DNA of 64,000 bases from Phyllobates terribilis (taxonomy: Eukaryota), in the NCBI RefSeq assembly GCF_046119375.1, contig NW_027362762.1, positions 358,112,001 through 358,176,000 on the forward strand, written 5' to 3'. Each line of letters starts with the position of its first letter. Positions within the stretch are counted from its first letter, which is position 1. A program made the translations under genes and the position numbers. Positions 2,660-52,500 of this stretch are shown piece after piece. The notes under the pieces are model-generated. The model did not search any database, was not told the DNA's origin, and saw nothing but the letters and a program-made list of their open reading frames with translations.

Positions 2660-3417
2660 ACTGCTTTGCACACTCTTGGCATTCTCTTGATGAGCTTCAA
2701 GAGGTAGTCACCGGAAATGGTCTTCCAACAATCTTGAAGGAGTTCCCAGAGATGCTTAGCACTTGTTGGCCCTTTTGCCTTCACTCTGCGGTCCAGCTCA
2801 CCCCAAACCATCTCGATTGGGTTCAGCTCTGGTGACTGTGGAGGCTAGGTCATCTGGCATAGCACCCCATCACTCTCCTTCTTAGTCAAATAGCCCTTAC
2901 ACAGCCTGGAGGTGTGTTTGGTGTCATTGTCCTGTTGAAAAATAAATGATGGTCCAACTAAACGCAAACCGGATGGAATAGCATGCCGCTGCAAGATGCT
3001 GTGGTAGCCATGCTGGTTCAGTATGCCTTCAATCTTGAATAAATCCCCAACAATGTCACCAGCAAAGCACCCCCTCACTATCACACCCCCTCCTCCATGC
3101 TTCACGGTGGGAACCAGGCATGTAGAGTCCATCCGTTCACCTTTTCTGCGTCGCACAAAGACACGGTGGTTGAAACCAAATTTGGACTCATCAGACCAAA
3201 AGCACAGATTTCCACTGGTCTGTTGTCCATTCCTTGTTTTCTTTAGCCCAAACAAGTCTCTTCTGCTTGTTGCCTGTCCTTAGCAGTGGTTTCCTAGCAG
3301 ATATTTTACCATGAAGGCCTGCTGCACAAAGTCTCCTCTTAACAGTTGTTGTAGAGATGTGTCTGCTGCTAGAACTCTGTGTGGCATTGACCTTGTCTCT
3401 AATCTGAGCTGCTGTTA

Positions 3418-4280
3418 GGCTGAGTTCACACGATGCGTATTTCATGCGTTTCCGCGGCATTTTTGCAGTTGCGTAAACGCCGTGGAAACGCATGAAAAAA
3501 CGCATGGTAGAAGGGAAGCAATGTTCCCCAATTGAAATCCGCATGTGCTGTGCCCATGATGCGGATTTTTCCGCAGCGTAAACGCTGCGCTCAAAAATCC
3601 GCAGCATGTCATTTAATTTTGCGGAAACGCGGCGTTTTCGCCGCCATTGACTTGCATTAGAACGCGCCAATTCCGCAAGACTGCATCTGTACTTGCGTTA
3701 TTGGCGCGTTCTAATGTGCGGATGGTACCCGAGTGTGGAGGAGAGGAGAGTCTCATCCACACCCAGGTACCATTAAAAAAGCTGTAAAAAACAAGAATAA
3801 AATAAAAAAAAAAAATATATATATATATATATATACTTACCATCTGTCGGCCCGCGCACCGCTCCTGCTTGCTTCCCGGCACTTGCAGTGAGTTGTAGGA
3901 CCTGCGGTGACGTCAGAGTCATGTGACGGGTCACGTGACGCTGACGTCGGCAGGTCTTTCAATTCAAAGTTGCTGGCAGCTGGGAGAACGGAGTGAGCAG
4001 GACAGCGCGGGCCATCGGAGGTAAGTATATACACTCTCTCGGGTCACACTATATAAATCCATGCTGTTTGCATGGATTTATATAGTGTGACCTAGTTGTC
4101 AAGACATTTCCAGGTGATGCTAAAATCGCCTGGAAAGCGCTTGTCAATCTGCATGTGGAAACGCATGTGGATCCGCATGTATTCTGCAGGAAAAACGCAT
4201 GCACAATCTGCATGCGTTTTTTTTCTGCCAGGGAGATGCAGAAATTTTCTGCTTCATTTCTGCATCGTGTGCACATAGCC
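3418..4280. mobile_element. PIF/Harbinger-type MITE (863 bp) inserted in the Tc1 transposase
   Basis: TTA TSD on both sides (3415-17, 4281-83). TIRs GGCTGAGTTCACAC / GTGTGCACATAGCC. Flanks rejoin as GCTG-TTA-ACCTG. Confidence 0.85.
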
Positions 4281-5024
4281 TTAACCTGCGATTTCTGATG
4301 GTGGTGACTCGGATAAACTTATCCTCAGAAGCAGAGGTGACTCTTGGTCTTGCTTTCCTGGGGCGGTCCTCATGTGAGCCAGTTTCTTTGTAGCGATTGA
4401 TGGTTTTTGCAACTGCACTTGGGGACACTTTAAAAGTTTGCCCAATTTTTCGCACTGACTGACCTTCATTTCTTAAAGTAATGATGGCCACTCGTTTTTC
4501 TTTACTTAGCTGCTTTTTTCTTGCCATAATACAAATTCTAACAGTCTATTCAGTAGGACTATCAGCTGTGTATCCACCTGACTTCTGCACAACACAACTG
4601 ATGGTCCCAACCCCATTTATAAGGCAAGTAATCCCACTTATTAAACCTGACAGGGCACACCTGTGAAGTGAAAACCATTTCCGGTGACTACCTCTTGAAG
4701 CTCATCAAGAGAATGCCAAGAGTGTGCAAAGCAGTCATCAAAGCAAAAGGTGGCTACTTTGAAGAACCTAGACTATAAGACATATTTTCAGTTGTTTCAC
4801 ACTTTTTTGTTAAGTATATAATTCCACATGTGTTAATTCATAGTTTTGATGCCTTCAGTGTGAATGTACAATTTTCAAAGTCATGAAAATACAGAAAAAT
4901 CTTTAAATGAGAAGGTGTGTCCAAACTTTTGGTCTGTACTGTATGTTTGAACATTCCAAAAGAATAATATGAAAGCATACAAAAAATCAAGACATGCAAA
5001 TATATAGAATAAAAGGAAATTCAC

Positions 5025-7423
5025 TTAGGTATAATGATACATAATCTCCCGACGTGCATTAAGACCATTAGGATGATCGCAAAATGCTTCTCTGGTAAGA
5101 AGATGTCGTCTGCGATCGCCCCCTCTCTGCATATGCTTAAGCCGTTCAATACCAAACACTTGTAAAGCATGGGTGTTTCTCTGATGTCGTTCAATAAAAT
5201 GTTTAGAAGCATGTGAAACATTCCGATTACTGCTACAAAGAGAAAAAATATCAGTCAAGTGTTCAGAAATACGGTCTTTCAATCTCCTGATGGTACATCC
5301 TACATAGATCAATTTACACTCCTTACATGATATAATATAAACCACTCCTCTAGTATTACAATTGATATATGTCTTAATGGGGAATGATTTGGTATAAGAG
5401 GAATTGAAAAACTCTTTTGCTGGAATCATGTGGCTGCACGTGCGGCATTTAGCCTGACCACAACCATAAAATCCCTGAAAGTTAAGCCATGTGGTCCTTT
5501 TTTTGACTGAAGAAAACAGAGATGGGGACAACACGTTGCCAATGGTTTTCCCTTTACGTGCTACAACAGAACACCCTGAATTTAAACTCTTAGATAAAAT
5601 GGGATCTTCAAATAGAATGGGTAAATGTTTGATTTAATCGCTGAAAATTCAGTACTATATTGTAGGGATAGAACCAATTTGTTTTTCTGTACCTTGCTAT
5701 TCCCATCGTGACGGACAATGTTATGTCTGTCTTTATTCTGTGATGTTCCGTTCCTGTTGTTATGAATATCAATATCTGAGTTATTCCCACTGACAATGTG
5801 TTGGCCCCTATTAAAAATCCATTTCGGATAACCACGTCGGATGAAATTGGTTTTAGAGCTGGATAATTCACCATCTAATATTTGTGCATTATTGCAATTT
5901 CTTGCTATATGTGTGAATTCACCCACTGGCACTGCTTTTATTGTGTGACGTGGGTGACTACTACTAGCATGCAAAATGGTATTACCAGAAAGAGGTTTAC
6001 AATAGGTACTTGTGGCAATGTTTTTATTAGAGATGCCGCACAAATTTAAATCCAAAAATGAAATATTATTTTTCTGGTGCTGATATGTGAAAGTAAGATT
6101 ACAATGATTGATATTCAAATAATGTATAAATTCGGGTATGGGAGATACATCGATGACCAACTCATCATATGGTCTGGCGATGTATCTGCCATACCAATAA
6201 ATATGTCCCAAAAAAGGATTGTCACAATACAAATAGCTCTCCTCCCAATAAGCCATAACCAGATTTGCCAACGAAGGTGAATATTTTGTCCCCATAGAAA
6301 CACCCCTGATTTGTATGTAAAATTGGCCATCGAAGGAGAAGTAATTAACTGTCATTAGAACGTCAACAACCTGTATGACAAAATTGCAAAGATCTGGTGA
6401 ATATTTACTGTAATTACCCAAATGGAAAGACAACGCCTCGAGAGCAATTTCCGGTGGAATAGATGTATATAGAGCAACAATATCACAGGAGATCCAACTG
6501 TAGTTCTCCTGCCACACTATATGGGATAGCTGCTCCAGAACATCACCTGTGTCCTGTAGAAAGCCGGGCGTCCTCTGTGACAGAGGCTGCAACAAGGAGT
6601 CCACCCACTCGCCCAGTGTCTCAGAGACTGAGCCGATACCCGATATAATGGGTTGCATAGGTGGAGGAGTGATCCCCTTGTGCACCTTGGGCAAAGCGTG
6701 CATGAATAGGGGTGACTGGAAAATCCACCTGCATATAATCACATTGGGTTTGAGTTAGAATGCCCAAAGACAAGCCATCCTGCTGGATATTGTTAATTTT
6801 TGTGGCAATATTTTTGACTGGATCACACTGCAATTTCATATAGGTGGTGGAATCACTTAATAGTGTTAGAATTTGGCATCTGTAAACATCTGAGTCCAAA
6901 ACAACCACCAGGCCGCATTTGTCAGTCATACGTGTCACAATATGATCCATATCTCGCAATTCTTGCAAAGCTTTTTGTTGATTTTTAGACAGATTGTGTT
7001 TTTTGTGATGTGTGCGATCACTATATGCCAGAATCCTAAATTCTCTTTCCATGGTTTCCTGGAACCGGTCCATACAATCAACACTGGGTTGAAGAGGATA
7101 AAAAAAGGGGTTCTTGGTTACAAAGGACGTCGCCTGCGATATTAATTCAGGTGCTGATGATTGATCTTGTAAATTCTGCAATTGTAATAGAGCCTTTTGT
7201 TCTTCAAATTTTAAAAGTCTATATTCATTTTTGATTGGCCGGGTGGAAACGTCCATTTGTGGTTCAGATTCAGAAAAAAAAATTTTTTTTTTATAGTCAC
7301 ATTGCGTATAAATTTATTGAGGTCAATGAGAGTAGAAAAAAGGTCAAAGTGTCTGTCTGGTACAAAAGAAAAACCCAGTGATAGGACTTCGTCCTGATCT
7401 TTAGCTAGTATCTGTTTTGACAA
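5025..7423 (-). pseudogene. Penelope-like RT-GIY-YIG polyprotein, frameshifted into several ORFs (7211-7423, 6621-7256, 5582-6742, 5025-5534)
   Basis: LSLGFSFVP N-terminal motif, RT palm motifs, thumb (HASSSHP..TIKAVPVGEF), GCGQAKCRTCSH linker, GVVYIISCKECKLIYVGCT..RLKDRISEH endonuclease. Confidence 0.88.
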
Positions 7424-7490
7424 ATTGAGAACGTTTGAGGTGTATTCATTTATGGTCGTTGCTTGCGGCGAGTTGTCATACCCGCAGGAT

Positions 7491-8216
7491 TTAATATGTT
7501 TGCGGCCACCTCTCCTTTTGCATTTTTTGCATATTTAGAAGCTTTTGCTTTACGATAATATGATGGCTTATTCCTATTTTCCACATCAATATTGATATCA
7601 TCCATTGATTCCTGATCTGAAGAACTAAATGAAACATGTAATTATAGTTATTTCTTCTTTTTAAGATTGATTTAGGTGAGAGGGAGGTACGAGACCATCT
7701 ACCCCATTCATACACTTGATGTGAAGCATAATCATTGCTGTCCCTGAGGAATTTGTCTTTTTTCCTCATCCTGATAGTAGATTCCGTTTTCTCCACCATA
7801 GAATCAATGCGTTTATTAAAGTCCTGATAATCAGGTTTATCTTTATGTTGTTCCAAGGAGGCATGAATATTAGATATTTCAGTTCGTAAGCTGTTAAGCT
7901 TCGAATCCTCTTGTTTAACAAAGAGTCTCATCAAATTCATGGAACAACCCGTCAATATTTGATTCCAATCGGTGACAACATTTTCTGAATAAATAGTAGT
8001 CGGAATCTTTTTTATTCTGAGGCCTCTTGGGATCATATTTTTTTGCAAATAATTTGTAAGTGTAGTTTGATCCCACCACACCTTCATCTCACTAAGCATT
8101 AACTTCTCGAGCTGTTTAAATAGCAAAGTCATATCATTTGAAACGGGTGTCTTCAGGGGATCAGAAGAAAAAACACTCTCAGCTTTTCTAAATCGTTCAG
8201 CCTGAGAACACGCCAT
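7491..8216 (-). CDS. Upstream ORF (ORF1-like, 241 aa) of the Penelope-like element
   Basis: Intact long ORF between the 5' pseudo-LTR and the RT frames, with WWD..L..YL...MIPRGLRI motif and a predicted coiled-coil-like region. Confidence 0.65.
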   Translation of the reverse strand: MACSQAERFRKAESVFSSDPLKTPVSNDMTLLFKQLEKLMLSEMKVWWDQTTLTNYLQKNMIPRGLRIKKIPTTIYSENVVTDWNQILTGCSMNLMRLFVKQEDSKLNSLRTEISNIHASLEQHKDKPDYQDFNKRIDSMVEKTESTIRMRKKDKFLRDSNDYASHQVYEWGRWSRTSLSPKSILKRRNNYNYMFHLVLQIRNQWMISILMWKIGISHHIIVKQKLLNMQKMQKERWPQTY

Positions 8217-8629
8217 TTGCTAATTCAGAAAAAAACTGCACCAATAAATATTCTGTTTTGAGTCTTTTGATTTTTTTAAATGGAGCTGTGAAAAAAACAA
8301 AAAAATCTCTTCAGGAAAAAAAGTGTATTTTCAATATTACTACAAGAACCTGCTGGTTCAAAAAAATGGGATTTCTGTGAGCTCGAAAAAATGACCAAAT
8401 ACAAGATAGAAAGTAAAAATAATTCAGCTCACCTGGTTCTCACATGCTCCTGATGCAGGGAAGCCCGGTAACGTGCGGTCTCACGTAAAAGGTAACAATA
8501 TAACTGGAAGAAAAAAACGGCTTCCGGGAAATAGAAGTTTCCAAAAAGATTTTTTTATTCGTAGAAAAATATTTCAAAACAGTACAGGCAATGAAATAAG
8601 ATTCAATGGGAATATCACATCATAAGAAC

Positions 8630-17433: not shown

Positions 17434-17630
17434 TATATAACACTGGGTTGGACACAAGGTATAAAACCTAGATTGAATTTTTTGTGAGCAGATTCTTTAG
17501 TAAGTTACATTTTAATTATTGCCTCACGAAGCATTCTTGTGAATTTAGGATTAAACTGACATACAAACACCTATGTTAGCTGCTAGTTTACCAAGCTTAA
17601 AGCATGTCAATTCTTTCTTTTTACTTAGAT

Positions 17631-18698
17631 ATGATGGAAGGACTGATGAGATTTACTTCAAGTCTACAAGTTCCTTCTAGTCTGGAAGACTTGCAGTACT
17701 CTTTCAATGAGCATGGAGAGTTGAGGCATTTGGTCACCAAGGAACCATTTGTCTACAATTACTACAAAAAAGAACATGAAAGAAATCACAAACGTTACAA
17801 AATGCTTGGAGATATAATCACGCTTCATATCTATGAACTACTTGAAAAACAACTCAACTTTGACAGAATTACTATTCCTATTGATGCTAGCGATGAAGAA
17901 CCAAAGTCATTCTTCTTCATGAGTAGGGAACCATTGAGTAATCAGAAAAAATTGTTCGTACTTCTTCAAGATAGAGGGGTAATCCGAGCCGGACAGTGGA
18001 GCCAAAAGGTCATAGTCCATCACTCTCTAGACAGAGGAACCCAGATCCCATATATCACCTCTGCTTTAAGAGACAACAGCTCAGTAATTGTCCTTAACCC
18101 CAATGACAATTTTGTGGAGATGAAAGAAGACACACAAGCTCTTGTCAAAAAAGAAGATGCTGTCTGTGTAGAAACCAGGGATGCATGTAATGTGTCTACA
18201 GATAAGAAGCTTGCTTTCCCTAAAAGATGTTGCACTTCTCCAGAAGAACACACCAACTATGTCTGGGATCACTTTATTTCGAGAAGTGCAGCTACGAATG
18301 TGTCATTTATTGCCCATGGGTATGGTGGCTTAGTGTTTATGGATTTGCTTAGTAAGAAAAGCCAAGAGGTCATGAGTAAAGTGACTGCTGTGGCTTTCAT
18401 AGATTCTAGGCATCATGCTCAGCATCAGACAAGAACTGACCCCGAAATATGGACTTGGATACGCTCACACTGCAGAAGCTGGGTATTAAGTGCCAAGCCG
18501 TTAGACAGACCTACTGGGTGTTTAAGAAAACTGGATTGTTACAAGGTATCTGCCGGAACTGAAAAATATGATCTTGCACCTTCTTGTGCTCTTCAGTCTA
18601 TTTTCCGATTTCTTAGTAGATCTTCAAAAAGTCGTCAATATTCAGTTCCCCCGGTACGCACAATGGTAACTAGAAGTTCAGTTAGGAAGTCAGTGTAA
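17631..18698 (+). CDS. FAM172B: FAM172/ARB2-family protein (FAM172B/ARB2B-like), single coding exon, ~355 aa from Met 17631
   Basis: Similar to FAM172A/ARB2A (YSFNEHGELRH, GVIRAGQWSQ, RGTQIPYI, VLNPNDN, YVWDHFI, AHGYGG, KVTAVAFIDS, VSAGTEK). Acceptor TTTTTACTTAG at 17628. Position upstream of TRMT10C and PCNP matches the human FAM172BP locus. The true start may lie in an upstream exon. Confidence 0.85.
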   Translation: MMEGLMRFTSSLQVPSSLEDLQYSFNEHGELRHLVTKEPFVYNYYKKEHERNHKRYKMLGDIITLHIYELLEKQLNFDRITIPIDASDEEPKSFFFMSREPLSNQKKLFVLLQDRGVIRAGQWSQKVIVHHSLDRGTQIPYITSALRDNSSVIVLNPNDNFVEMKEDTQALVKKEDAVCVETRDACNVSTDKKLAFPKRCCTSPEEHTNYVWDHFISRSAATNVSFIAHGYGGLVFMDLLSKKSQEVMSKVTAVAFIDSRHHAQHQTRTDPEIWTWIRSHCRSWVLSAKPLDRPTGCLRKLDCYKVSAGTEKYDLAPSCALQSIFRFLSRSSKSRQYSVPPVRTMVTRSSVRKSV

Positions 18699-28769: not shown

Positions 28770-31700
28770 CTATATAGGTGTACAGAGCCTACTCTATACG
28801 TTACACAGTAGGTATATAGGCGTGCAAAGCCTACTCTATATGTTACACTGTGGGTATATAGAAGCACAGAGCCTACGCTATACGTTACACTGTAGGTATA
28901 TAGGAGTACACAGCCTACTCTATACGTTACACTGTGGGTATATAGGAGTGCACAGCCTACTCTATACGTTACACTGTCGGTATATAGGAGTACAGAGCCT
29001 ACTCTATAAGTTACACTGTCGGTATATAGGAGTACACAGCCTACTCTATATGTTACACTGTGGGTATATAGAAGTACACAGCCTACTCTATAAGTTACAC
29101 TGTCGGTATATAGGAGCACAGAGCCTACTCTATACGTTACACTGTCGGTATATAGAAGCACAGGGCCTACGCTATACGTTACACTGTAGGTATATAGGAG
29201 TACACAGCCTACTCTATACGTTACACTGTAGGTATATAGAAATACACAGCCTACTCTATACGTTACACTATGGGTATATAGGAGCACAGAGCCTACTCTA
29301 TACGTTACACTGTGGGTATATAGGAGTACACAGCCTACTCTATACGTTACACTGTAGGTATATAAAAATACACAGCCTACTCTATACGTTACACTGTAGG
29401 TATATAGAAATACACAGCCTACTCTATAGGTTACACTGTGGGTATATAGGAGTACACAGCCTACTCTATACGTAACACTGTGGGTATATAGGAGTACACA
29501 GCCTACTCTATAAGTTACACTGTCAGTATATAGGAGTACACAGCCTTCTCTATACGTTACACTGTAGCTATATAGGAGTACACAGCCTACTCTATACGTT
29601 ACACTGTGGGTATTGTAAGGCAGCGCTAGTCATCATAATGGGGGTTACTCGCTGCACCGGGTCAATTAAGGCACATAAGCAATGTATTTACGCTTTTCTC
29701 ACAATGTTGCAGTTTATTACATAATAAGCCACAGTTCACCGGGTCCAACTCCGTGGCACGCCGACACACATATCTACAATATTCATGAGACAAGTGGCAC
29801 ACAGGCCCACTTGCTCCAGGTTACAGCCTACGGCAAGGTAATAAATTATCAATGTCCATAACACAGTCCATGTAACAAAGTGTATTACCTTTGCCGGGTT
29901 TTAGCTGCTACAGTCCGTTTATTCCGCCACCACTGTGGCTTTGCGGCTTTCCCAGGTGGGGGTCTCTAGCCGTCGTCCCCTCGTAGGCTACTGGTATGTC
30001 TTCCACACTTGACATCCAGCCTGCGCCTTTCAGGGTTCTTCACCAAGCCGGCTCTCCCTCAAAGGCCACTGACATCCACGCACAGGATCCAGGCTCGGCC
30101 TTTCAGGCTGCCAGGCTTCACTCTCGGCCTCCGTAGGCCTCTCACAAACGGTGTCCCACACACACGGAGCACAGGCCTCACGCCTCACACACCTGTCTCA
30201 AATTACCAGGGTTTATATATCCTGTGCACACACAAACTGACAGGACCTTGCTGATGTCACAGTCATGTGATCAGTCAGCAGTGTGTATAGGTCCTGTGTG
30301 CTGTCCCAGTCATGTGTACAGACCTTTACTGTGCATACAGGACCTGTGTGATGTCACAGTCATGTGACCAGTCACCTGAGGGGAGAGGTATATGGTCAGG
30401 TAAAACACATCCTAGACCATTACCGTAATGCAAGCACGTCGCTGCATTACAGTATATAGGAGTACACAGCATACTCTATACGTTACACTGTCGTTATATA
30501 GGAGTACAGAGCCTACTCTATAAGTTACACTGTCGGTATATAGGAGTACACAGCCTACTCTATACGTTACACTGTGGGTATATAGGAGTGCACAGCCTAC
30601 TCTATATGTTACACTGTGGGTATATAGAAGTACACAGCCTACTCTATACGTTACACTGTCGGTATATAGGAGTACACAGCCTACTCTATACGTTACACTG
30701 TGGGTATATAGGAGTACACAGCCTACTCTATACGTTACACTGTCGGTATACAGGAGTACACAGCCTACTCTATACGTTACACTGTGGGTATATAGGAGTG
30801 CACAGCCTACTCTATACGTTACACTGTCGGTATATAGGAGTACACAGCCTACTCTATACGTTACACTGTGGGTATATAGGAGTACACAGCCTACTCTATA
30901 CATTATACTGTGGGTATATAGGAGTACACAGCCTACTCTATACGTTACACTGTGGGTATATATAGGAGTACACAGCCTACTCTATACGTTACACTGTGGG
31001 TATATAGGAGTACACAGCCTACTCTATACGTTACACTGTCGGTATATAGGAGTACACAGCCTACTCTATACGTTACACTGTGGGTATATATAGGAGTACA
31101 CAGCCTACTCTATACGTTACACTGTGGGTATATAGGAGTACACAGCCTACTCTATACGTTACACTGTCGGTATATAGGAGTAGACAGCCTACTCTATACA
31201 TTACACTGTCGGTATATAGGAGCACAGAGCCTACTCTATACGTTACACTGTCGGTATATAGGAGCACAGAGCCTACTCTATACGTTACACTGTCGGTATA
31301 TAGGAGTACACAGCCTACTCTATACGTTACACTGTGGGTATATATAGGAGTACACAACCTACTCTATACGTTACACTGTGGGTATATAGGAGTACACAGC
31401 CTACTCTATACGTTACACTGTCGGTATATAGGAGCACAGAGCCTACTCTATACGTTACACTGTCGGTATATAGGAGTAGACAGCCTACTCTATACGTTAC
31501 ACTGTCGGTATATAGGAGTAGACAGCCTACTCTATACGTTACACTGTCGGTATATAGGAGTACACAGCCTACTCTATACGTTACACTGTCGGTATATAGG
31601 AGTACACAGCCTACTCTATACGTTAAACTGTCGGTATATAGGAGTACACAGCCTACTCTATACGTTACACTGTGGGTATATAGGAGTAGACAGCCTACTC

Positions 31701-34700
31701 TATACGTTACACTGTCGGTATATAGGAGTAGACAGCCTACTCTATACGTTACACTGTCGGTATATAGGAGTAGACAGCCTACTCTATACGTTACACTGTC
31801 GGTATATAGGAGTAGACAGCCTACTCTATACGTTACACTGTCGGTATATAGGAGTACACAGCCTACTCTATACGTTACACTGTGGGTATATAGGAGTACA
31901 CAGCCTACTCTATACGTTACACTGTGGGTATATAGGAGTAGACAGCCTACTCTATACGTTACACTGTCGGTATATAGGAGTAGACAGCCTACTCTATACG
32001 TTACACTGTCGGTATATAGGAGTACAGAGCCTACTCTATACGTTACACTGTGGGTATATAGGAGTAGACAGCCTACTCTATACGTTACACTGTCGGTATA
32101 TAGGAGTAGACAGCCTACTCTATACGTTACACTGTCGGTATATAGGAGTACACAGCCTACTCTATACGTTACACTGTCGGTATATAGGAGTACACAGCCT
32201 ACTCTATACGTTACACTGTCGGTATATAGCAGTACACAGCCTACTCTATATTTTACACTGTAGGTATATAGAAGTACACAGCCTACTCTATACGTTACAC
32301 TGTCGGTATATAGGAGTACAGAGCCTACTCTATACGTTACACTGTGGGTATATAGGAGCACAGAGCCTACTCTATACGTTACACTGTGGGTATATAGGAG
32401 TACACAGCCTACTCTATACGTTACACTGTCGGTATATAGGAGTACACAGCCTACTCTATACGTTACACTGTCGGTATATAGGAGTACACAGCCTACTCTA
32501 TACGTTACATTGTCGGTATATAGGAGTGCACAGCCTACTCTATACGTTACACTGTGGGTATATAGGAGCGCACAGCCTACTCTATACGTTACACTGTCGG
32601 TATATAGGAGCACAGAGCCTACTCTATACGTTACACTGTGGGTATATAGGAGCACACAGCCTACTCTATACGTTACACTGTGGGTATATAGGAGTACACA
32701 GCCTACTCTATACGTTACACTGTCGGTATATAGGAGTACACAGCCTACTCTATACGTTACACTGTCGGTATATAGGAGTACACAGCCTACTCTATACGTT
32801 ACACTGTCGGTATATAGGAGTACAGAGCCTACTCTATACGTTACACTGTGGGTATATAGGAGCACAGAGCCTACTCTATACGTTACACTGTGGGTATATA
32901 GGAGCACACAGCCTACTCTATACGTTACACTGTGGGTATATAGGAGTACACAGCCTACTCTATACGTTATACTGTCGGTATATAGGAGTACACAGCCTAC
33001 TCTATACGTTACACTGTCGGTATATAGGAGTACACAGCCTACTCTATACGTTACACTGTGGGTATATAGGAGTACACAGCCTACTCTATACGTTACACTG
33101 TGGGTATATTTAGTACACAGCCTACTCTATACGTTACACTGTGGGTATATATAGGAGTACACAGCCTACTCTATACGTTACACTGTGGGTATATAGGAGT
33201 ACACAGCCTACTCTATACGTTACACTGTCGGTATATAGGAGTACACAGCCTACTCTATACGTTACACTGTCGGTATATAGGAGTACACAGCCTACTCTAT
33301 ACGTTACACTATCGGTATATAGGAGTACACAGCCTACTCTATACGTTACACTGTGGGTATATAGGAGTGCACAGCCTACTCTATACGTTACACTGTCGGT
33401 ATATAGGAGTACAGAGCCTACTCTATACGTTACACTGTGGGTATATAGGAGCACACAGCCTACTCTATACGTTACACTGTGGGTATATAGGAGTACACAG
33501 CCTACTCTATACGTTACACTGTCGGTATATAGGAGTACACAGCCTACTCTATACGTTACACTGTCGGTATATAGGAGTACAGAGCCTACTCTATACGTTA
33601 CACTGTGGGTATATAGGAGCACAGAGCCTACTCTATACGTTACACTGTGGGTATATAGGAGTAGACAGCCTACTCTATACGTTACACTGTGGGTATATAT
33701 AGGAGTACACAGCCTACTCTATACGTTACACTGTCGGTATATAGGAGTACACAGCCTACTCTATACGTTACACTGTGGGTATATATAGGAGTACACAGCC
33801 TACTCTATACGTTACACTGTGGGTATATAGGAGTACACAGCCTACTCTATACGTTACACTGTCGGTATATAGGAGTACACAGCCTACTCTATACGTTACA
33901 CTGTCGGTATATAGGAGTAGACAGCCTACTCTATACGTTACTCTGTCGGTATATAGGAGTACACAGCCTACTCTATACGTTACACTGTCGGTATATAGGA
34001 GCACAGAGCCTACTCTATACGTTACACTGTGGGTATATAGGAGTAGACAGCCTACTCTATACGTTACACTGTCGGTATATAGGAGTAGACAGCCTACTCT
34101 ATACGTTACACTGTCGGTATATAGGAGTAGACAGCCTACTCTATACGTTACACTGTCGGTATACAGGAGTACACAGCCTACTCTATACGTTACACTGTCG
34201 GTATATAGGAGTACACAGCCTACTCTATACGTTACACTGTCGGTATATAGGAGTACACAGCCTACTCTATACGTTACACTGTGGGTATATAGGAGTACAC
34301 AGCCTACTCTATACGTTACACTGTGGGTATATAGGAGTAGACAGCCTACTCTATACGTTACACTGTCGGTATATAGGAGTAGACAGCCTACTCTATACGT
34401 TACACTGTCGGTATATAGGAGTACAGAGCCTACTCTATACGTTACACTGTGGGTATATAGGAGTAGACAGCCTACTCTATACGTTACACTGTCGGTATAT
34501 AGGAGTAGACAGCCTACTCTATACGTTACACTGTCGGTATATAGGAGTACACAGCCTACTCTATACGTTACACTGTCGGTATATAGGAGTACACAGCCTA
34601 CTCTATACGTTACACTGTCGGTATATAGCAGTACACAGCCTACTCTATATTTTACACTGTAGGTATATAGAAGTACACAGCCTACTCTATACGTTACACT

Positions 34701-37700
34701 GTCGGTATATAGGAGTACAGAGCCTACTCTATACGTTACACTGTGGGTATATAGGAGCACAGAGCCTACTCTATACGTTACACTGTGGGTATATAGGAGT
34801 ACACAGCCTACTCTATACGTTACGCTGTCGGTATATAGGAGTACACAGCCTACTCTATACGTTACACTGTCGGTATATAGGAGTACACAGCCTACTCTAT
34901 ACGTTACATTGTCGGTATATAGGAGTACACAGCCTACTCTATACGTTACACTGTGGGTATATAGGAGCGCACAGCCTACTCTATACGTTACACTGTCGGT
35001 ATATAGGAGCACAGAGCCTACTCTATACGTTACACTGTGGGTATATAGGAGCACACAGCCTACTCTATACGTTACACTGTGGGTATATAGGAGTACACAG
35101 CCTACTCTATACGTTACACTGTCGGTATATAGGAGTACACAGCCTACTCTATACGTTACACTGTCGGTATATAGGAGTACACAGCCTACTCTATACGTTA
35201 CACTGTCGGTATATAGGAGTACAGAGCCTACTCTATACGTTACACTGTGGGTATATAGGAGCACAGAGCCTACTCTATACGTTACACTGTGGGTATATAC
35301 GAGCACACAGCCTACTCTATACGTTACACTGTGGGTATATAGGAGTACACAGCCTACTCTATACGTTATACTGTCGGTATATAGGAGTACACAGCCTACT
35401 CTATACGTTACACTGTGGGTATATAGGAGTACACAGCCTACTCTATACGTTACACTGTGGGTATATAGGAGTACACAGCCTACTCTATACGTTACACTGT
35501 GGGTATATATAGGAGTACACAGCCTACTCTATACGTTACACTGTGGGTATATAGGAGTACACAGCCTACTCTATACGTTACACTGTCGGTATATAGGAGT
35601 ACACAGCCTACTCTATACGTTACACTGTCGGTATATAGGAGTACAGAGCCTACTCTATACGTTACACTGTGGGTATATAGGAGCACAGAGCCTACTCTAT
35701 ACGTTACACTGTGGGTATATAGGAGTAGACAGCCTACTCTATACGTTACACTGTGGATATATAGGAGTAGACAGCCTAATCTATACGTTACACTGTCGGT
35801 ATATAGGAGTACACAGCCTACTCTATACGTTACACTGTGGGTATATATAGGAGTACACAGCCTACTCTATACGTTACACTGTGGGTATATAGGAGTACAC
35901 AGCCTACTCTATACGTTACACTGTCGGTATATAGGAGTACACAGCCTACTCTATACGTTACACTGTCGGTATATAGGAGTACACAGCCTACTCTATACGT
36001 TACACTGTCGGTATATAGGAGTACACAGCCTACTCTATACGTTACACTGTCGGTATATAGGAGTACACAGCCTACTCTATACGTTACACTGTGGGTATAT
36101 AGGAGTGCACAGCCTACTCTATACGTTACACTGTCGGTATATAGGAGTACAGAGCCTACTCTATACGTTACACTGTGGGTATATAGGAGCACACAGCCTA
36201 CTCTATACGTTACACTGTGGGTATATAGGAGTACACAGCCTACTCTATACGTTACACTGTCGGTATATAGGAGTACACAGCCTACTCTATACGTTACACT
36301 GTGGGTATATATAGGAGTACACAGCCTACTCTATACGTTACACTGTGGGTATATAGGAGTACACAGCCTACTCTATACGTTACACTGTCGGTATATAGGA
36401 GTACACAGCCTACTCTATACGTTACACTGTGGGTATATATAGGAGTACACAGCCTACTCTATACGTTACACTGTCGGTATATAGGAGTACACAGCCTACT
36501 CTATATTTTACACTGTAGGTATATAGAAGTACACAGCCTACTCTATACGTTACACTGTCGGTATATAGGAGTACACAGCCTACTCTATACGTTACACTGT
36601 CGGTATATAGGAGTACAGAGCCTACTCCATACGTTACACTGTGGGTATATAGGAGCACAGAGCCTACTCTATACGTTACACTGTCGGTATATAGGAGTAC
36701 AGAGCCTACTCTATACGTTACACTGTGGGTATATAGGAGTACACAGCCTACTCTATACGTTACACTGTCGGTATATAGGAGTACACAGCCTACTCTATAC
36801 GTTACACTGTCGGTATATAGGAGTACACAGCCTACTCTATATGTTACACTGTCGGTATACAGGAGTACACAGCCTACTCTATACGTTACACTGTCGGTAT
36901 ATAGGAGTACAGAGCCTACTCCATACGTTACACTGTGGGTATATAGGAGCACAGAGCCTACTCTATACGTTACACTGTCGGTATATAGGAGTACAGAGCC
37001 TACTCTATACGTTACACTGTGGGTATATAGGAGTACACAGCCTACTCTATACGTTACACTGTCGGTATATAGGAGTACACAGCCTACTCTATACGTTACA
37101 CTGTCGGTATATAGGAGTACAGAGCCTACTCTATACGTTACACTGTGGGTATATAGGAGCACAGAGCCTACTCTATACGTTACACTGGGGTATATAGGAG
37201 TAGACAGCCTACTCTATACGTTACACTGTCGGTATATAGGAGTAGACAGCCTAATCTATACGTTACACTGTCGGTATATAGGAGTACACAGCCTACTCTA
37301 TACGTTACACTGTGGGTATATATAGGAGTACACAGCCTACTCTATACGTTACACTGTGGGTATATAGGAGTACACAGCCTACTCTATACGTTACACTGTC
37401 GGTATATAGGAGTATACAGCCTACTCTATACGTTACACTGTCGGTATATAGGAGTACACAGCCTACTCTATACGTTACAATGTCGGTATATAGGAGTAGA
37501 CAGCCTACTCTATACGTTACACTGTCGGTATATAGGAGTACACAGCCTACTCTATACGTTACACTGTCGGTATATAGGAGCACAGAGCCTACTCTATACG
37601 TTACACTGTGGGTATATAGGAGTACACAGCCTACTCTATACGTTACACTGTCGGTATATAGGAGTAGACAGCCTACTCTATAAGTTACACTGTCGGTATA

Positions 37701-40700
37701 TAGGAGTACACAGCCTACTCTATACGTTACACTGTCGGTATATAGGAGTAGACAGCCTACTCTATACGTTACACTGTCGGTATATAGGAGTACACAGCCT
37801 ACTCTATACGTTACACTGTCGGTATATAGGAGTACACAGCCTACTCTATACGTTACACTGTGGGTATATATAGGAGTACACAGCCTACTCTATACGTTAC
37901 ACTGTGGGTATATAGGAGTACACAGCCTACTCTATACGTTACACTGTGGGTATATAGGAGTACACAGCCTACTCTATACGTTACACTGTGGGTATATAGG
38001 AGTGCACAGCCTACTCTATACGTTACACTGTCGGTATATAGGAGTACAGAGCCTACTCTATACGTTACACTGTGGGTATATAGGAGCACACAGCCTACTC
38101 TATACGTTACACTGTGGGTATATAGGAGTACACAGCCTACTCTATACGTTACACTGTCGGTATATAGGAGTACACAGCCTACTCTATACGTTACACTGTG
38201 GGTATATATAGGAGTACACAGCCTACTCTATACGTTACACTGTGGGTATATAGGAGTACACAGCCTACTCTATACGTTACACTGTCGGTATATAGGAGTA
38301 CACAGCCTACTCTATACGTTACACTGTGGGTATATATAGGAGTACACAGCCTACTCTATACGTTACACTGTCGGTATATAGGAGTACACAGCCTACTCTA
38401 TATTTTACACTGTAGGTATATAGAAGTACACAGCCTACTCTATACGTTACACTGTCGGTATATAGGAGTACAGAGCCTACTCCATACGTTACACTGTGGG
38501 TATATAGGAGCACAGAGCCTACTCTATACGTTACACTGTCGGTATATAGGAGTACAGAGCCTACTCTATACGTTACACTGTGGGTATATAGGAGTACACA
38601 GCCTACTCTATACGTTACACTGTCGGTATATAGGAGTACACAGCCTACTCTATACGTTACACTGTCGGTATATAGGAGTACACAGCCTACTCTATATGTT
38701 ACACTGTCGGTATACAGGAGTACACAGCCTACTCTATACGTTACACTGTCGGTATATAGGAGTACAGAGCCTACTCCATACGTTACACTGTGGGTATATA
38801 GGAGCACAGAGCCTACTCTATACGTTACACTGTCGGTATATAGGAGTACAGAGCCTACTCTATACGTTACACTGTGGGTATATAGGAGTACACAGCCTAC
38901 TCTATACGTTACACTGTCGGTATATAGGAGTACACAGCCTACTCTATACGTTACACTGTCGGTATATAGGAGTACACAGCCTACTCTATATGTTACACTG
39001 TCGGTATACAGGAGTACACAGCCTACTCTATACGTTACACTGTCGGTATATAGGAGTACAGAGCCTACTCTATACGTTACACTGTCGGTATATAGGAGTA
39101 CACAGCCTACTCTATACGTTACACTGTCGGTATACAGGAGTACACAGCCTACTCTATACGTTACACTGTCGGTATATAGGAGTACACAGCCTACTCTATA
39201 CGTTACACTCTCGGTATACAGGAGTACACAGCCTACTCTATACGTTACACTGTCGGTATACAGGAGTACACAGCCTACTCTATAAGTTACACTGTGGGTA
39301 TATAGGAGTACACAGCCTACTCTATACGTTACACTGTCGGTATATAGGAGTACACAGCCTACTCTATACGTTACACTGTAGGTATATAGAAGTACAGAGC
39401 CTACTCTATACGTTACACTGTCGGTATACAGGAGTACACAGCCTACTCTATACGTTACACTGTCGGTATATAGGAGCACACAGCCTACTCTATATGTTAC
39501 ACTGTGGGTATATAGGAGTACACAGCCTACTCTATACGTTACACTGTCGGTATATAGGAGTACACAGCCTACTCTATACGTTACACTGTCAGTATATAGA
39601 AGTACACAGCCTACTCTATATTTTACACTGTATGTATATAGAAGTACACAGCCTACTCTATACGTTACACTGTCGGTATATAGGAGTACACAGCCTACTC
39701 TATACGTTACACTGTCGGTATATAGGAGTACACAGCCTACTCTATACGTTACACTGTGGGTAGATAGGAGTACACAGCCTACTCTATACGTTACACTGTG
39801 GGTATATAGGAGTACACAGCCTACTCTATACGTTACACTGTGGGTATATATAGGAGTACACAGCCTACTCTATATGTTACACTGTGGGTATATAGGAGTA
39901 CACAGCCTACTCTATACGTTACACTGTCGGTATATAGGAGTACACAGCCTACTCTATACGTTACACTGTGGGTATATATAGGAGTACACAGCCTACTCTA
40001 TACGTTACACTGTGGGTATATAGGAGTACACAGCCTACTCTATACGTTACACTGTCGGTATATAGGAGTACACAGCCTACTCTATACGTTACACTGTCGG
40101 TATATAGGAGTAGACAGCCTACTCTATACGTTACACTGTCGGTATATAGGAGCACAGAGCCTACTCTATACGTTACACTGTCGGTATATAGGAGTAGACA
40201 GCCTACTCTATACGTTACACTGTCGGTATATAGGAGTACACAGCCTACTCTATACGTTACACTGTGGGTATATATAGGAGTACACAACCTACTCTATATG
40301 TTACACTGTGGGTATATAGGAGTACACAGCCTACTCTATACGTTACACTGTCGGTATATAGGAGCACAGAGCCTACTCTATACGTTACACTGTCGGTATA
40401 TAGGAGTAGACAGCCTACTCTATACGTTACACTGTCAGTATATAGGAGTACACAGCCTACTCTATACGTTACACTGTCGGTATATAGGAGTAGACAGCCT
40501 ACTCTATACGTTACACTGTCGGTATACAGGAGTACACAGCCTACTCTATACGTTACACTGTCGGTATATAGGAGTACACAGCCTACTCTATACGTTACAC
40601 TGTGGGTATATAGGAGTACACAGCCTACTCTATACGTTACACTGTGGGTATATAGGAGTACACAGCCTACTCTATACGTTACACTGTGGGTATATAGGAG

Positions 40701-43031
40701 TACACAGCCTACTCTATACGTTACACTGTCGGTATATAGGAGCACACAGCCTACTCTATACGTTACACTGTCGGTATATAGGAGCACACAGCCTACTCTA
40801 TACGTTACACTGTCTGTATATAGGAGTACACAGCCTACTCTATACGTTACACTGTCGGTATATAGGAGTAGACAGCCTACTCTATACGTTACACTGTCGG
40901 TATATAGGAGTAGACAGCCTACTCTATACGTTACACTGTCGGTATATAGGAGTAGACAGCCTACTCTATACGTTACACTGTCGGTATATAGGAGTAGACA
41001 GCCTACTCCATACGTTACACTGTCGGTATATAGGAGTAGACAGCCTACTCCATACGTTACACTGTGGGTATATAGGAGTACACAGCCTACTCTATACGTT
41101 ACACTGTGGGTATATAGGAGTACACAGCCTACTCTATACGTTACACTGTCGGTATATAGGAGTAGACAGCCTACTCTATACGTTACACTGTCGGTATATA
41201 GGAGTACACAGCCTACTCTATACGTTACACTGTGGGTATATAGGAGTACACAGCCTACTCTATACGTTACACTGTGGGTATATATAGGAGTACACAGCCT
41301 ACTCTATACGTTACACTGTGGGTATATATAGGAGTACACAGCCTACTCTATACGTTACACTGTCGGTATATAGGAGTACACAGCCTACTCTATACGTTAC
41401 ACTGTCGGTATATAGGAGTAGACAGCCTACTCTATACGTTACACTGTCGGTATATAGGAGCACAGAGCCTACTCTATACGTTACACTGTCGGTATATAGG
41501 AGTAGACAGCCTACTCTATACGTTACACTGTCGGTATATAGGAGTACACAGCCTACTCTATACGTTACACTGTGGGTATATATAGGAGTACACAACCTAC
41601 TCTATATGTTACACTGTGGGTATATAGGAGTACACAGCCTACTCTATACGTTACACTGTCGGTATATAGGAGCACAGAGCCTACTCTATACGTTACACTG
41701 TCGGTATATAGGAGTAGACAGCCTACTCTATACGTTACACTGTCAGTATATAGGAGTACACAGCCTACTCTATACGTTACACTGTCGGTATATAGGAGTA
41801 GACAGCCTACTCTATACGTTACACTGTCGGTATACAGGAGTACACAGCCTACTCTATACGTTACACTGTCGGTATATAGGAGTACACAGCCTACTCTATA
41901 CGTTACACTGTGGGTATATAGGAGTACACAGCCTACTCTATACGTTACACTGTGGGTATATAGGAGTACACAGCCTACTCTATACGTTACACTGTGGGTA
42001 TATAGGAGTACACAGCCTACTCTATACGTTACACTGTGGGTATATAGGAGTACACAGCCTACTCTATACGTTACACTGTCGGTATATAGGAGCACACAGC
42101 CTACTCTATACGTTACACTGTCGGTATATAGGAGCACACAGCCTACTCTATACGTTACACTGTCTGTATATAGGAGTACACAGCCTACTCTATACGTTAC
42201 ACTGTCGGTATATAGGAGTAGACAGCCTACTCTATACGTTACACTGTCGGTATATAGGAGTAGACAGCCTACTCTATACGTTACACTGTCGGTATATAGG
42301 AGTAGACAGCCTACTCTATACGTTACACTGTCGGTATATAGGAGTAGACAGCCTACTCCATACGTTACACTGTCGGTATATAGGAGTAGACAGCCTACTC
42401 CATACGTTACACTGTGGGTATATAGGAGTACACAGCCTACTCTATACGTTACACTGTGGGTATATAGGAGTACACAGCCTACTCTATACGTTACACTGTC
42501 GGTATATAGGAGTAGACAGCCTACTCTATACGTTACACTGTCGGTATATAGGAGTACACAGCCTACTCTATACGTTACACTGTGGGTATATAGGAGTACA
42601 CAGCCTACTCTATACGTTACACTGTGGGTATATATAGGAGTACACAGCCTACTCTATACGTTACACTGTGGGTATATATAGGAGTACACAGCCTACTCTA
42701 TACGTTACACTGTGGGTATATAGGAGTACACAGCCTACTCTATACGTTACACTGTCGGTATATAGGAGTACACAGCCTACTCTATACGTTACACTGTCGG
42801 TATATAGGAGTACACAGCCTACTCTATACGTTACACTGTGGGTATATAGGAGTACACAGCCTACTCTATACGTTACACTGTGGGTATATATAGGAGTACA
42901 CAGCCTACTCTATACGTTACACTGTGGGTATATATAGGAGTACACAGCCTACTCTATACGTTACACTGTCGGTATATAGGAGTAGACAGCCTACTCTATA
43001 CGTTACACTGTCGGTATATAGGAGTACAGAG
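28770..43031 (+). repeat. 42-bp tandem satellite, consensus GGAGTACACAGCCTACTCTATACGTTACACTGT(C/G)GGTATATA, ~320 copies, ~14 kb
   Basis: Directly visible. Occasional 44-bp units (extra TA); divergent left edge and homogeneous right part. Confidence 0.99.
29614..30451. mobile_element. Solo LTR (838 bp) inserted in the satellite
   Basis: TGTAA...TTACA termini and a 4-bp TSD GTAT (29610-13, 30452-55). Confidence 0.88.
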
Positions 43032-44972: not shown

Positions 44973-46232
44973 ATGGGGTTCATGAACGCATTCCTACGAA
45001 CCTTTAGGTGTTCTACAGTCCACGTTATAATTAAGGAAGGTATAAATAGACAGCACCCCTTAAGAATCTCTCACCAGCTCATGCAATGCAGAATGTTGAC
45101 ACTGACCCACTGCACAAGGAACCAAGAGAAGCCCAGTGTTTCCGAAAAGTTAGATCTGGACACGTGGAAAAATATTTTAAAAAGTGCTGCACAAAAGACT
45201 GAAAGTGAAGAAAGTGAGCCAGAAATTGAAGAAGAGTCCACCATTGAAAGTATGCAGAAGCTTGTTGACATGTGGAGACTGGCAGGAAAAGCCATACCAG
45301 ACTCCATTGGCACAGAGGAGCTACAGGCTCTTCTGGAGCTTCCCACAAAGTCATCCAGAAAAAAATACCTGAAACAACTCCACTTTAAAGAGCTAAACAA
45401 GAAAAACAAGCAAAAAAAGAAATTAGAAAAAGAGCAGTCAAAGAGTGGTGTTGAGATTAACACTGAGAAGCCAAGTACCTACTTGCTAAAGTTCAGGAAT
45501 AGGTCAGAGGATTGCTTTGAAGCATGGCGTTGTGCCCAAGCTATGATATTTGGGCAACCACTAATATTTGATATGGCTTATGAACGTTACATGTCTCAGA
45601 GGGAAATGGAGAACACGGTGAGTCAAATTCAGATGTGTGACGGCTTCAACAAAAGCTCCAAGGAACCCTTTCATCTTCATTTCTGTAACCTACAACCCAA
45701 TGGTCCATACCATAAAGAGTTGGTGAAACGTTATGACGGTGCCTTTGATAACCTTTTGATAACTACCACTGAAAAATCTCACGTCGACATCTTCCCCAAG
45801 GATCGACTGGTTTACCTCACGGCTGACTCTCCAAATGTGCTCAAGACATTTGAGCACGATAAAATTTATATCATTGGGGCTTTTGTTGACAAAAGTCAAA
45901 AGACTGGAGTGTCTTTAGGAAATGCTAAGCGGCTACAGTTAGCCACAGCACGGCTACCAATAGATAGCTTCCTGAAGTGGACCCGTGGAGGCAAAAATCT
46001 CACTCTTAACAATGTGATTGAAATCCTGATGACTGTTAAGGACACTGGAGACTGGAAGACAGCAATGTCCTCTGTTCCAACCAGAAAACATGATGGATTA
46101 AGGGAAAGTCGTAAATCTGAGCAAATCTTGTCAAAAAATGCTAAAACATACGAGTTACTGAAACAGAAAGCCTCAAAGGCTCAAAAAGAGACCCAAAATG
46201 GGCCTAAAAACTGGTGGCAAGAGAGTGATTAA
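44973..46232 (+). CDS. TRMT10C: tRNA methyltransferase 10C / mitochondrial RNase P protein 1 (419 aa, single coding exon)
   Basis: Basic N-terminal presequence, AQAMIFGQPLIFDMAYE, PFHLHFCNL, LVYLTADSPNVL, IYIIGAFVDK, LATARLPID, LTL motifs of the SPOUT Trm10 domain; acceptor TTTCTTTCAG at 44949. Confidence 0.97.
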   Translation: MGFMNAFLRTFRCSTVHVIIKEGINRQHPLRISHQLMQCRMLTLTHCTRNQEKPSVSEKLDLDTWKNILKSAAQKTESEESEPEIEEESTIESMQKLVDMWRLAGKAIPDSIGTEELQALLELPTKSSRKKYLKQLHFKELNKKNKQKKKLEKEQSKSGVEINTEKPSTYLLKFRNRSEDCFEAWRCAQAMIFGQPLIFDMAYERYMSQREMENTVSQIQMCDGFNKSSKEPFHLHFCNLQPNGPYHKELVKRYDGAFDNLLITTTEKSHVDIFPKDRLVYLTADSPNVLKTFEHDKIYIIGAFVDKSQKTGVSLGNAKRLQLATARLPIDSFLKWTRGGKNLTLNNVIEILMTVKDTGDWKTAMSSVPTRKHDGLRESRKSEQILSKNAKTYELLKQKASKAQKETQNGPKNWWQESD

Positions 46233-50429: not shown

Positions 50430-52500
50430 ATTCTGTGCCGTACCTCTGGGTTCAAAATGTTCACTATACACCTTAATAAAATCCTTGAGGGGTATAGTTT
50501 GGACACTTGTGGGGGAGCTCCACTGTTTAGGCACATCACGGGCTCTTCAAACGCGACATGGTGTCCGCTAACAAATTGAATGGAAAATCGGCTCAAATTG
50601 TTAGCGGACGCCATGTTGCGTTTGGAGAGCCCCTGTGTGCCCAAACATTGGAGCTCCCCCACAAGTGACCCCATTTTGGAAACTAGATCCCCCAAGGCAC
50701 CTATCTAGATGCATAGTGAGCACTTGGAATCCCCAGGTGCTTCACAAATTGATTCGTAAAAATGAAAAAGTGAAAAAAAAAACACTTTTTCATTTTTATG
50801 AATCAATTTGTGAAGCACCTGGGGTTCCAAGTGCTCACTATGAATCTAGATAGGTGCCTTGGGGGGTCTAGTTTCCAAAATGGGGTCACTTGTGGGGGAG
50901 CTCCAATGTTTGGGCACGCAGGGACTCTCTAAATGCAACATGGTATCCGCTAACAAATTGAATGGAAAATCGGCTCAAATTGTTAGCGGACACCACATTG
51001 CGTTTGGAGAGCCCCTCTGTGCCCAAACTTTGGAGCTCCCCCACAAGTGACCCCATTTTGGAAACTAGACCCCCCAAGGCACCTTTCTAGATGCATAGTG
51101 AGCACTTGGAACCCCCAGGTGCTTCACAAATTGATTCGTAATAATGAAAAAGTGAAAAAAAAACACTTTTTCATTTTTATGAATCAATTTGTGAAGCACC
51201 TGGGGTTCCAAGTGCTCACTATGAATCTAGATAGGTGCCTTGGGGGGTCTAGTTTCCAAAATGGGGTCACTTGTGGGGGAGCTCCAATGTTTGGGCACAC
51301 AGGGACTCTCCAAATGCAACATGATATCCGCTAACAAATTGTCGGCTCAAATTGTTAGCGGATATCATGTTGCATTTGGAGAGTCCCTGTGTGCCCAAAC
51401 ATTGGAGCTCCCCAACAAGTGACCCCATTTTGGAAACTAGACCCCCCAAGGCACCTATCTAGATGCATAGTGAGCACTTGGAACCCCTAGGTGCTTCGCA
51501 AATTGATTTGTAAAAATGAAAAAGTGTTTTTTTTTTCACTTTTTCATTATTACGAATCAATTTGTGAAGCACCTGGGGGTTCCAAGTGCTCACTATGCAT
51601 CTAGAAAGGTGCCTTGGGGGGTCTAGTTTCCAAAATGGGGTCACTTGTGGGGGAGCTCCAAAGTTTGGGCACAGAGGGGCTCTCCAAACGCAATGTGGTG
51701 TCCGCTAACAATTTAAGCCGATTTTCCATTCAATTTTTTAGCGGATACCATGTTGCATTTAGAGAGTCCCTGTGTGCCCAAACATTGGAGCTCCCCCACA
51801 AGTGACCCCATTTTGGAAACTAGACCCCCCAAGGCACCTATCTAGATGCATAGTGAGCACTTGGAACCCCTAGGTGCTTCACAAATTGATTCGTAAAAAT
51901 GAAAAAGTGTTTTTTTTTTTCACTTTTTCATTATTACGAATCAATTTGTGAAGCACCTGGGGGTTCCAAGTGCTCACTATGCATCTAGAAAGGTGCCTTG
52001 GGGGGTCTAGTTTCCAAAATGGGGTCACTTGTGGGGGAGCTCCAAAGTTTGGGCACAGAGGGGCTCTCCAAACGCAATGTGGTGTCCGCTAACAATTTGA
52101 GCCGATTTTCCATTCAATTTGTTAGCGGATACCATGTTGCATTTAGAGAGTCCCTGTGTGCCCAAACATTGGAGCTCCCCCACAAGTGACCCCATTTTGG
52201 AAACTAGACCCCCCAAGGCACCTATCTAGATGCATAGTGAGCAGTTGGAACCCCCAGGTGCTTCACAAATTGATTCATAACAATGAAAAAGTGGTTTTTT
52301 TTTCACTTTTTCATTTTTACGAATCAATTTGTGAAGCACCTGGGGGTTGCAACTGCTCACTATGCATCTAGATAGGTGCCTTGGGGGGTCTAGTTTCCAA
52401 AATGGGGTCACTTGTGGGGGAGCTCCAATGTTTGGGCACACAGGGGCTCTCTAAACGCAACATGGTGTCCGCTAATTATTCAAGCAAATTTTACAATCAA
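50430..52500. repeat. Array of ~190-bp units in alternating orientation (period ~380 bp)
   Basis: GGGGGTCTAGTTTCCAAAATGGGGTCACTTGTGGGGGAGCTCC and its reverse complement alternate; mirror ORFs in the ORF track. Confidence 0.92.

Follow-up and report, generated by a model that had tools for sequence, protein, structure and literature searches.

How does the catalytic motif of a reverse transcriptase (RT) come to lie on the wrong strand of its own gene while the reading frame around it stays open? The question is raised by a degenerate Penelope-like element (PLE) on the minus strand, from about position 8216 to 5025, of a 64,000-nucleotide stretch of Phyllobates terribilis DNA (contig NW_027362762.1, positions 358,112,001 to 358,176,000), which was analysed as a whole and is called the window here. 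The catalytic YxDD is absent from the RT frame of this copy, which reads YGRYIARPYDEL, and the motif is found on the opposite strand. We propose, with considerable confidence in the overall picture, a one-off inversion of a hairpin loop by template switching in a decayed PLE, at a standing and conserved RNA hairpin.

Two inverted arms, at 6135–6152 and 6178–6195, are 18 nt long each, match at 17 of 18 positions (94% complementary) and enclose a loop of 25 nt. The hairpin region reads YGRYIARPYDELVIDVSPIP in the RT frame. The minus-strand open reading frame (ORF) at 5582–6742 (386 aa) includes ...WYGRYIARPYDELVIDVSPIPEF..., and the plus-strand ORF at 6077–6280 includes YGRYIDDQLIIWSGDVSAIP. An earlier note on this DNA had reported these arms, their coordinates, the loop length and both translations, and a repeat search and the ORF translations agree with it in each respect.

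Relatives of the element read WYGRYIDD(L/I)xxxWxxDVxAIP (40–50% identity) over the same length as the window. Their readings, for instance WYGRYIDDLLIIWGGDVPAIP and WYGRYIDDLLLVWGGDIPAIQ, agree in residues and length with the plus-strand translation of the window, and the span from Y to P is 20 residues in the window and in the relatives alike. With tblastn, residues 426–446 of protein P0159 align to window positions 6137–6199 on the plus strand (76% identity, E 1e-6), unlike the remainder of the RT, which aligns on the minus strand. The comparison was carried to the nucleotide level with nine distinct relatives, apparently frog elements, for which DNA was at hand (L001, L002, L003, L009, L013, L014, L015, L025 and L026). 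The window loop agrees with theirs at 5.1 of 25 positions in RT sense, no better than random, against 15.4 of 25 when it is taken as its reverse complement; the relatives agree among themselves at 15.2 of 25. Since the reverse-complement match stands at the level of one relative against another and the length is equal, the loop between the arms is an exact, length-preserving inversion with no indel, and the flip of YIDD described in the earlier note is upheld. That the frame stays open across the flipped loop is unremarkable, as eight stop-free codons are expected about two times in three.

The 81-nt stretch over the hairpin has a predicted folding energy of −32.9 kcal/mol when read in RT sense and of −34.7 kcal/mol on the opposite strand (z = −6.2 and −6.0, respectively), and 0 of 200 shuffles were as good. 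By our own arithmetic, about 0.003 inverted repeats of 17/18 with a spacer of at most 60 nt are expected per 64 kb of random sequence. Inverted repeats of 16 nt or longer number 50 in the window, most of them within satellites and transposons, and the case therefore rests on the comparison with relatives, not on such statistics. As to the sole mismatch between the arms, the window carries CCC in its 3′ arm where relatives have GCC or TCC, so that, in RT sense, a perfect GGC:GCC pair in the relatives is GGC:CCC in the window, a substitution private to this copy. We considered the mismatch as a marker of the inversion breakpoint and rejected it; with the relatives perfectly paired there, a private substitution is uninformative.

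A hairpin shared by related elements

The hairpin, with its loop in the forward orientation, is present in all nine relatives. The earlier note had left room for arms made by the inversion event; seen in 9 of 9 relatives with DNA, they pre-exist it. Stem statistics were computed on 18 pairs of an alignment of 10 sequences (A3; 180 cells), in which the 5′ arm occupies columns 11–28. Two distant PLE fragments recovered by a protein-alignment scan of metagenome contigs (L004 and L005) served as outgroups. The motif region is missing from three more sequences of that scan (L006–L008), and scans of viral and of bacterial and archaeal contigs found no relatives.

Codons of the two arms face each other in a fixed register: Trp (GG) with Pro (CC), Tyr with Ile or Val, Gly with Ala or Ser, Arg with Ser, Pro, Ala or Thr, Tyr with Val, Met or Ile, and Ile with Asp or Asn. 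Pairing in A3 reaches 95.6% of stem cells; shuffles give 87.5 ± 1.3 (0/500), and sliding the 3′ partner lowers the figure to 23–43%. Compensatory changes affecting both sides occur in 6 of the 18 stem pairs (5/500 shuffles), 15 further pair types are seen in the stem (1/500 shuffles), and the covariation score of the stem is 0.316 vs 0.156 (0/500 shuffles). RNAalifold recovers the same stem and adds 4 bp outward, an extension that is 80.6% paired and contains 3 covarying pairs. The Arg codon and its partner illustrate how far the two sides move together: the combinations AGA:TCT, AGG:CCT, CGC:GCG, CGT:ACG, CGT:GCG and CGG:TCG all occur, and the partner residue (S, P, A or T) shifts along with the Arg codon. 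Elsewhere in the stem, stepwise routes through G·U pairs are visible, as in TAC:GTA to TAT:GTA to TAT:ATG, and ATC:GAT to ATT:GAT to ATT:AAT.

The relatives fold at −37.7 to −50.8 kcal/mol (z −5.5 to −9.9). The distant PLEs L004 and L005 have no fold at the site (z −0.5 and −1.8), and therefore the hairpin belongs to one lineage. Its 3′ arm lies over a stretch that is variable in other PLEs (W.G.E..L..F), which explains how this arm could come to mirror the constrained 5′ arm.

Protein coding does not account for the pairing. When the amino acids were held fixed and codons were redrawn from the elements' own usage (5000 draws), this synonymous recoding gave 127.6 ± 4.9 paired cells with a maximum of 146, against 172 of 180 observed. 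Elsewhere in the gene, synonymous sites are saturated, with 0.18–0.36 codon identity at conserved Gly, Ala and Pro columns. Within the stem, Gly is GGC in 9 of 10 cases, all 8 Ala codons are GCC and all 8 Ile codons are ATA, a codon that is rare at other Ile columns. The departures from Watson–Crick pairing are also lopsided: 14 stem cells are G·U, 1 is A·C and 7 are of other kinds. Synonymous changes that would give A·C (TAT to TAC opposite ATA, or GAT to GAC opposite ATC) are absent, yet the two Asp codons of the loop show free variation; this favours a structure of the sense-strand RNA. In keeping with a sense bias, 8 of the 9 relatives have a stronger fold on the sense than on the antisense strand, the mean difference being 11.2 kcal/mol (p = 0.008).

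The stem thus looks like a conserved, co-varying sense-strand RNA structure of one PLE lineage, which the earlier note had overlooked, and we think it likely that selection on the RNA of the element has maintained the hairpin. As to function, our preferred guess would be a cis-acting element of the PLE transcript, a site of protein binding or of translation pausing. We hypothesize more tentatively, as a possibility that we would not yet favour, that a neobatrachian PLE lineage has in the hairpin a functional cis-acting RNA element, needed for replication of the element or for control of its translation (by RT binding or a ribosome pause, for example), and that the hairpin has persisted over a very long period through a variable part of the protein that follows the codons of the catalytic motif; as it brackets the YIDD codons, loop flips would then be a recurrent, structure-driven route to loss of RT activity among copies of the lineage.

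No Rfam family was found for the hairpin in the window or the nine relatives, three sub-threshold matches being due to chance, and the hairpin is not mentioned in the PLE literature searched. No conserved slippery heptamer, as for programmed −1 frameshifting, was seen upstream by eye in alignment A4, the one alignment inspected for it. An inner helix of the loop (A4 columns 36–44 with 51–59) is not claimed, as it is only 61.7% paired and its register varies.

In several relatives, additional outward pairs lengthen the stem (about 26 bp in L015), and there is more folding within the 25-nt loop. The extended form (L015:1957–2037, L009:1158–1238, L026:2307–2387 and others) is a 27–30-bp hairpin of 61–77 nt, the size of a microRNA precursor; a microRNA-precursor test gave no Rfam match on the hairpin in the window or the nine relatives. 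A group of Logan contigs (L015–L024) encodes one and the same intact 542-aa PLE protein, obtained by separate assembly in each of ten SRA runs of the SRR5149xxx series, with an identical 69-nt stretch over the hairpin. Its recurrence in ten runs would fit a transcribed and possibly active element.

Origin of the inversion

In the course of events that we propose, the sense RNA of this lineage would form a hairpin from the codons W-Y-G-R-Y-I in the 5′ arm, DD..W.. in the loop and D-V-S/P/A/T-A-I-P in the 3′ arm, and the protein stretch under the 3′ arm would have evolved so as to keep complementarity with the constrained 5′ arm. In the window copy only, the spacer between the arms would have been swapped for its exact reverse complement through a double template switch by a DNA polymerase, guided by both arms. 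The polymerase would move to the opposite strand at one arm, copy the loop backwards and return at the other arm, without an indel and with both arms left unmarked. Inversion of loops at perfect hairpins via template switching is documented (PMC8794818; PMC5453318), and, judged from its product, this route is the most likely one here; the inversion would probably have taken place after insertion. The event was most likely a single neutral lesion, not a regulated switch, in a copy that is also frame-shifted: forward loops in 18 of 18 comparable proteins, a flipped copy that is otherwise broken and a stem that behaves as RNA all argue for a one-off. By its sequence, the window copy is a dead PLE member, with at least three frame breaks and no YxDD in its RT frame. 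The earlier note held that a template-switch inversion had silenced the active site. The loop is indeed flipped and YIDD is off the RT frame, but silencing cannot be credited to the inversion, since the other frame breaks leave the copy dead regardless.

Several points weigh against this interpretation or blunt it. Recombination between the arms or processing of a cruciform would yield an identical sequence. The window holds only one copy of the family, and the protein collections have no close member (above 57% identity), so that the age of the inversion and its order with respect to the frame breaks are unplaceable. Part of the G·U excess follows simply from which changes are synonymous, and the covariation comes from nine relatives that share ancestry, a modest sample in which not all changes are independent. 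There is, finally, a slight chance that the assembly itself is in error.

Such an artefact, with a true locus in the forward orientation and a loop misoriented by the assembler or polisher, deserves thought because graph assemblers can be confused by inverted repeats. The arms, however, are only 18 nt long with a mismatch, their longest perfect stretch is 10 nt, and any longer k-mer or read should fix the orientation; the private substitution in the arm and the three frame breaks fit an old, freely mutating copy. We consider an artefact very unlikely. Another possibility is that the loop was inverted during retrotransposition, whether in a master copy or through a strand switch during cDNA synthesis, so that the element was inserted already flipped and the frame breaks came later. 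Reverse transcriptases readily switch templates, and the RNA template would hold a very stable hairpin, yet first-strand synthesis runs on single-stranded RNA that has no complementary strand, so that extra steps should be needed. The data do not separate an event before insertion from one after it, and we find an origin in retrotransposition unlikely, if clearly less so than an artefact. A different challenge is directed at the hairpin itself: rather than being selected as RNA, it might be kept complementary by repeated template-switch “correction” between the arms, the same process having also flipped the loop here. Template switching can build stems, introduce compensatory changes of several bases at a time and invert loops (PMC8794818), and a three-base change such as AGA:TCT to CGC:GCG would be easy by such a route. 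Correction of this kind yields Watson–Crick pairs, though, and the stem has 14 G·U cells against a single A·C; stepwise G·U paths are visible and the sense strand is favoured. With synonymous sites saturated elsewhere in the gene, correction would moreover have had to outpace point mutation for very long. This explanation appears to us improbable to about the same degree as inversion during retrotransposition, and selection on the RNA remains our preferred account of the stem.

The earlier note went further and suggested a built-in, recurrent or reversible on/off device, that is, a hairpin that exists so that flips of its loop toggle RT activity. With arms that pre-exist and are conserved in all relatives, every copy would indeed carry a substrate for flipping, and the exact flip leaves the frame open. 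Nonetheless, 18 proteins whose residues are compatible with the arms, including 9 for which DNA was read as well, are all forward and none has an inverted loop. The single flipped copy is dead on other grounds, neither a recombinase nor any other switch machinery is apparent, no sign of a regulated flip was seen, and the sense bias (14 G·U vs 1 A·C; sense fold better by 11 kcal/mol) suggests structure at the level of RNA rather than a switch site in DNA. The suggestion is not borne out, and we give such a device next to no credence. A milder statement can be made: the site is a standing hairpin where flips could in principle recur, and recurrence among the very many genomic copies in frogs is plausible.

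The host element and its surroundings

The features of the element are collected in the table. The open piece that holds the hairpin matches PLE RT proteins at E 1e-107 to 1e-40, with 443 library proteins below 1e-30, and the named homologues are all anuran (Bufo bufo, B. gargarizans, Hyla sarda, Xenopus and others). The closest database proteins are 49–57% identical to it and none in the protein collections exceeds 57%; an exact-protein look-up gave no record, and no second copy of the element was found within the window by blastn and tblastn. Some of the closest predicted proteins (P0003, P0044, P0050, P0148 and P0158) stop 5–30 residues before the WYGRYIDD site.

Table. Features of the Penelope-like element and its hairpin (window coordinates).
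Feature	Position	Strand	Description
Hairpin 5′ arm (RT sense)	6178–6195	−	Last two bases of Trp codon, codons Tyr-Gly-Arg-Tyr-Ile, first base of next codon
Inverted loop, 25 nt	6153–6177	−	RT sense (I)ARPYDELVI; plus strand DDQLIIWSG
Hairpin 3′ arm (RT sense)	6135–6152	−	Codons Asp-Val-Ser-Pro-Ile-Pro; bears the sole mismatch
Open piece of PLE RT gene holding the hairpin	5582–6742	−	386 aa; homologues at 40–52% identity are anuran PLE RT proteins
N-terminal part of RT–endonuclease gene	6705–7438	−	Two further frames; tblastn of P0159, P0162 and P0014
C-terminal part with GIY-YIG endonuclease	5031–5630	−	Another frame; Pfam PF01541, E 3.5e-7; tblastn
Upstream ORF of the element	7491–8216	−	241 aa; 36% identical (E 7e-37) to upstream ORF of relative L026

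The RT–endonuclease gene is collinear with the full-length proteins P0159, P0162 and P0014, and its frame changes fall near 7277–7289, 6703–6705 and 5630. The GIY-YIG match lies at about 5169–5348, on the ORF 5025–5534, collinear with the relatives. According to the earlier note, an ORF-based RT scan would miss the catalytic motif owing to the inversion. Pfam RVT_1 does give no match on the window ORF, but it is weak or absent on intact relatives too, and the miss can hardly be laid to the inversion. A hammerhead ribozyme or pseudo-long terminal repeat (pLTR) gave no Rfam match in 4800–8600 (E up to 1) or in the whole window (gathering score), the ends of the element being unmapped.

The rest of the window is rich in repeats. 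A 42-bp satellite occupies 12.6 kb (30452–43028; 298 copies at 95% match), with a block of 20 copies upstream (28771–29613), and yields many spurious long ORFs. At 50504–52475, a 384-bp unit made of long palindromes is repeated about five times, with inverted arms of up to 373 nt at 90%. Remnants of Tc1/mariner-type transposases lie at 3191–4527 on the minus strand and 55156–55737 on the plus strand (Sleeping Beauty-like helix-turn-helix, HTH_Tnp_Tc3_2 and a DDE_3 ORF), and a perfect 23-nt palindrome is found at 4042–4092. Two uninterrupted plus-strand ORFs, at 17604–18698 and 44973–46232, match Arb2 (E 1e-65) and a tRNA m1G methyltransferase (E 3e-34), respectively, and may be single-exon genes or retrocopies. 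A run of 133 N bases (459–591) adjoins a 79-bp tandem repeat of 2.5 copies (648–845).

Comparison with known systems

The locus offers a clean natural case of a long (25-nt) hairpin-loop flip within a coding sequence. The catalytic motif has been removed yet the frame is open, so that ORF-based annotation would call the gene intact. The conserved hairpin that the inversion exposed matters more than the inversion: a strongly co-varying sense-strand stem over the active-site codons of an RT is a testable candidate for a cis-element, in which amino-acid replacements (S/P/A/T) follow synonymous changes of the Arg codon. It is also a test case for separating selection on RNA structure from homogenisation by template switching.

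Small inversions at non-coding hairpins of chloroplast genomes and quasipalindrome mutagenesis in E. coli likewise involve inverted repeats with a flipping spacer, and they recur at the same hairpins. These cases are organellar or bacterial and mostly non-coding, and recurrence is documented for them but not for the PLE hairpin. In bacterial invertons, inverted repeats flank a segment that is turned on or off; they depend on a site-specific recombinase, and the two orientations are found side by side within a population. Here there is no sign of a recombinase or of coexisting orientations, and the PLE arms appear to act as an RNA stem with G·U pairs.

For ribosomal and further RNA genes, loop inversions at hairpins have been ascribed to template switching (Mönttinen and Löytynoja 2022, PMC8794818), and the human genome is likewise known to carry short template-switch mutations (Löytynoja and Goldman 2017, PMC5453318). 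The PLE hairpin has in common with them the exact reverse complement of the spacer, the unchanged length and the stem free of any footprint; the same process has also been proposed to create and maintain stems. The published loop inversions are mostly of 4 nt and reach 7–8 nt (PMC8794818), whereas the PLE loop measures 25 nt and lies inside a protein-coding gene, where its flip removes a catalytic motif and keeps the frame open.

On the side of RNA structure, very little is known of how PLEs recognise and copy their own RNA (PMC11167929). The hammerhead ribozyme of the pLTR is the sole RNA motif known for PLEs (PMC4209133); it sits elsewhere in the element than the coding hairpin and was not found in the window. 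A conserved RNA structure within PLE coding sequence is not described in the literature searched. Conserved RNA structures in coding regions are described for the 5′ domain of Ty1 (PMC5454406) and for influenza hemagglutinin (PMC6704317); such structures and the PLE stem appear alike in that a stem is kept, over coding sequence, by covariation together with constraint on synonymous sites.
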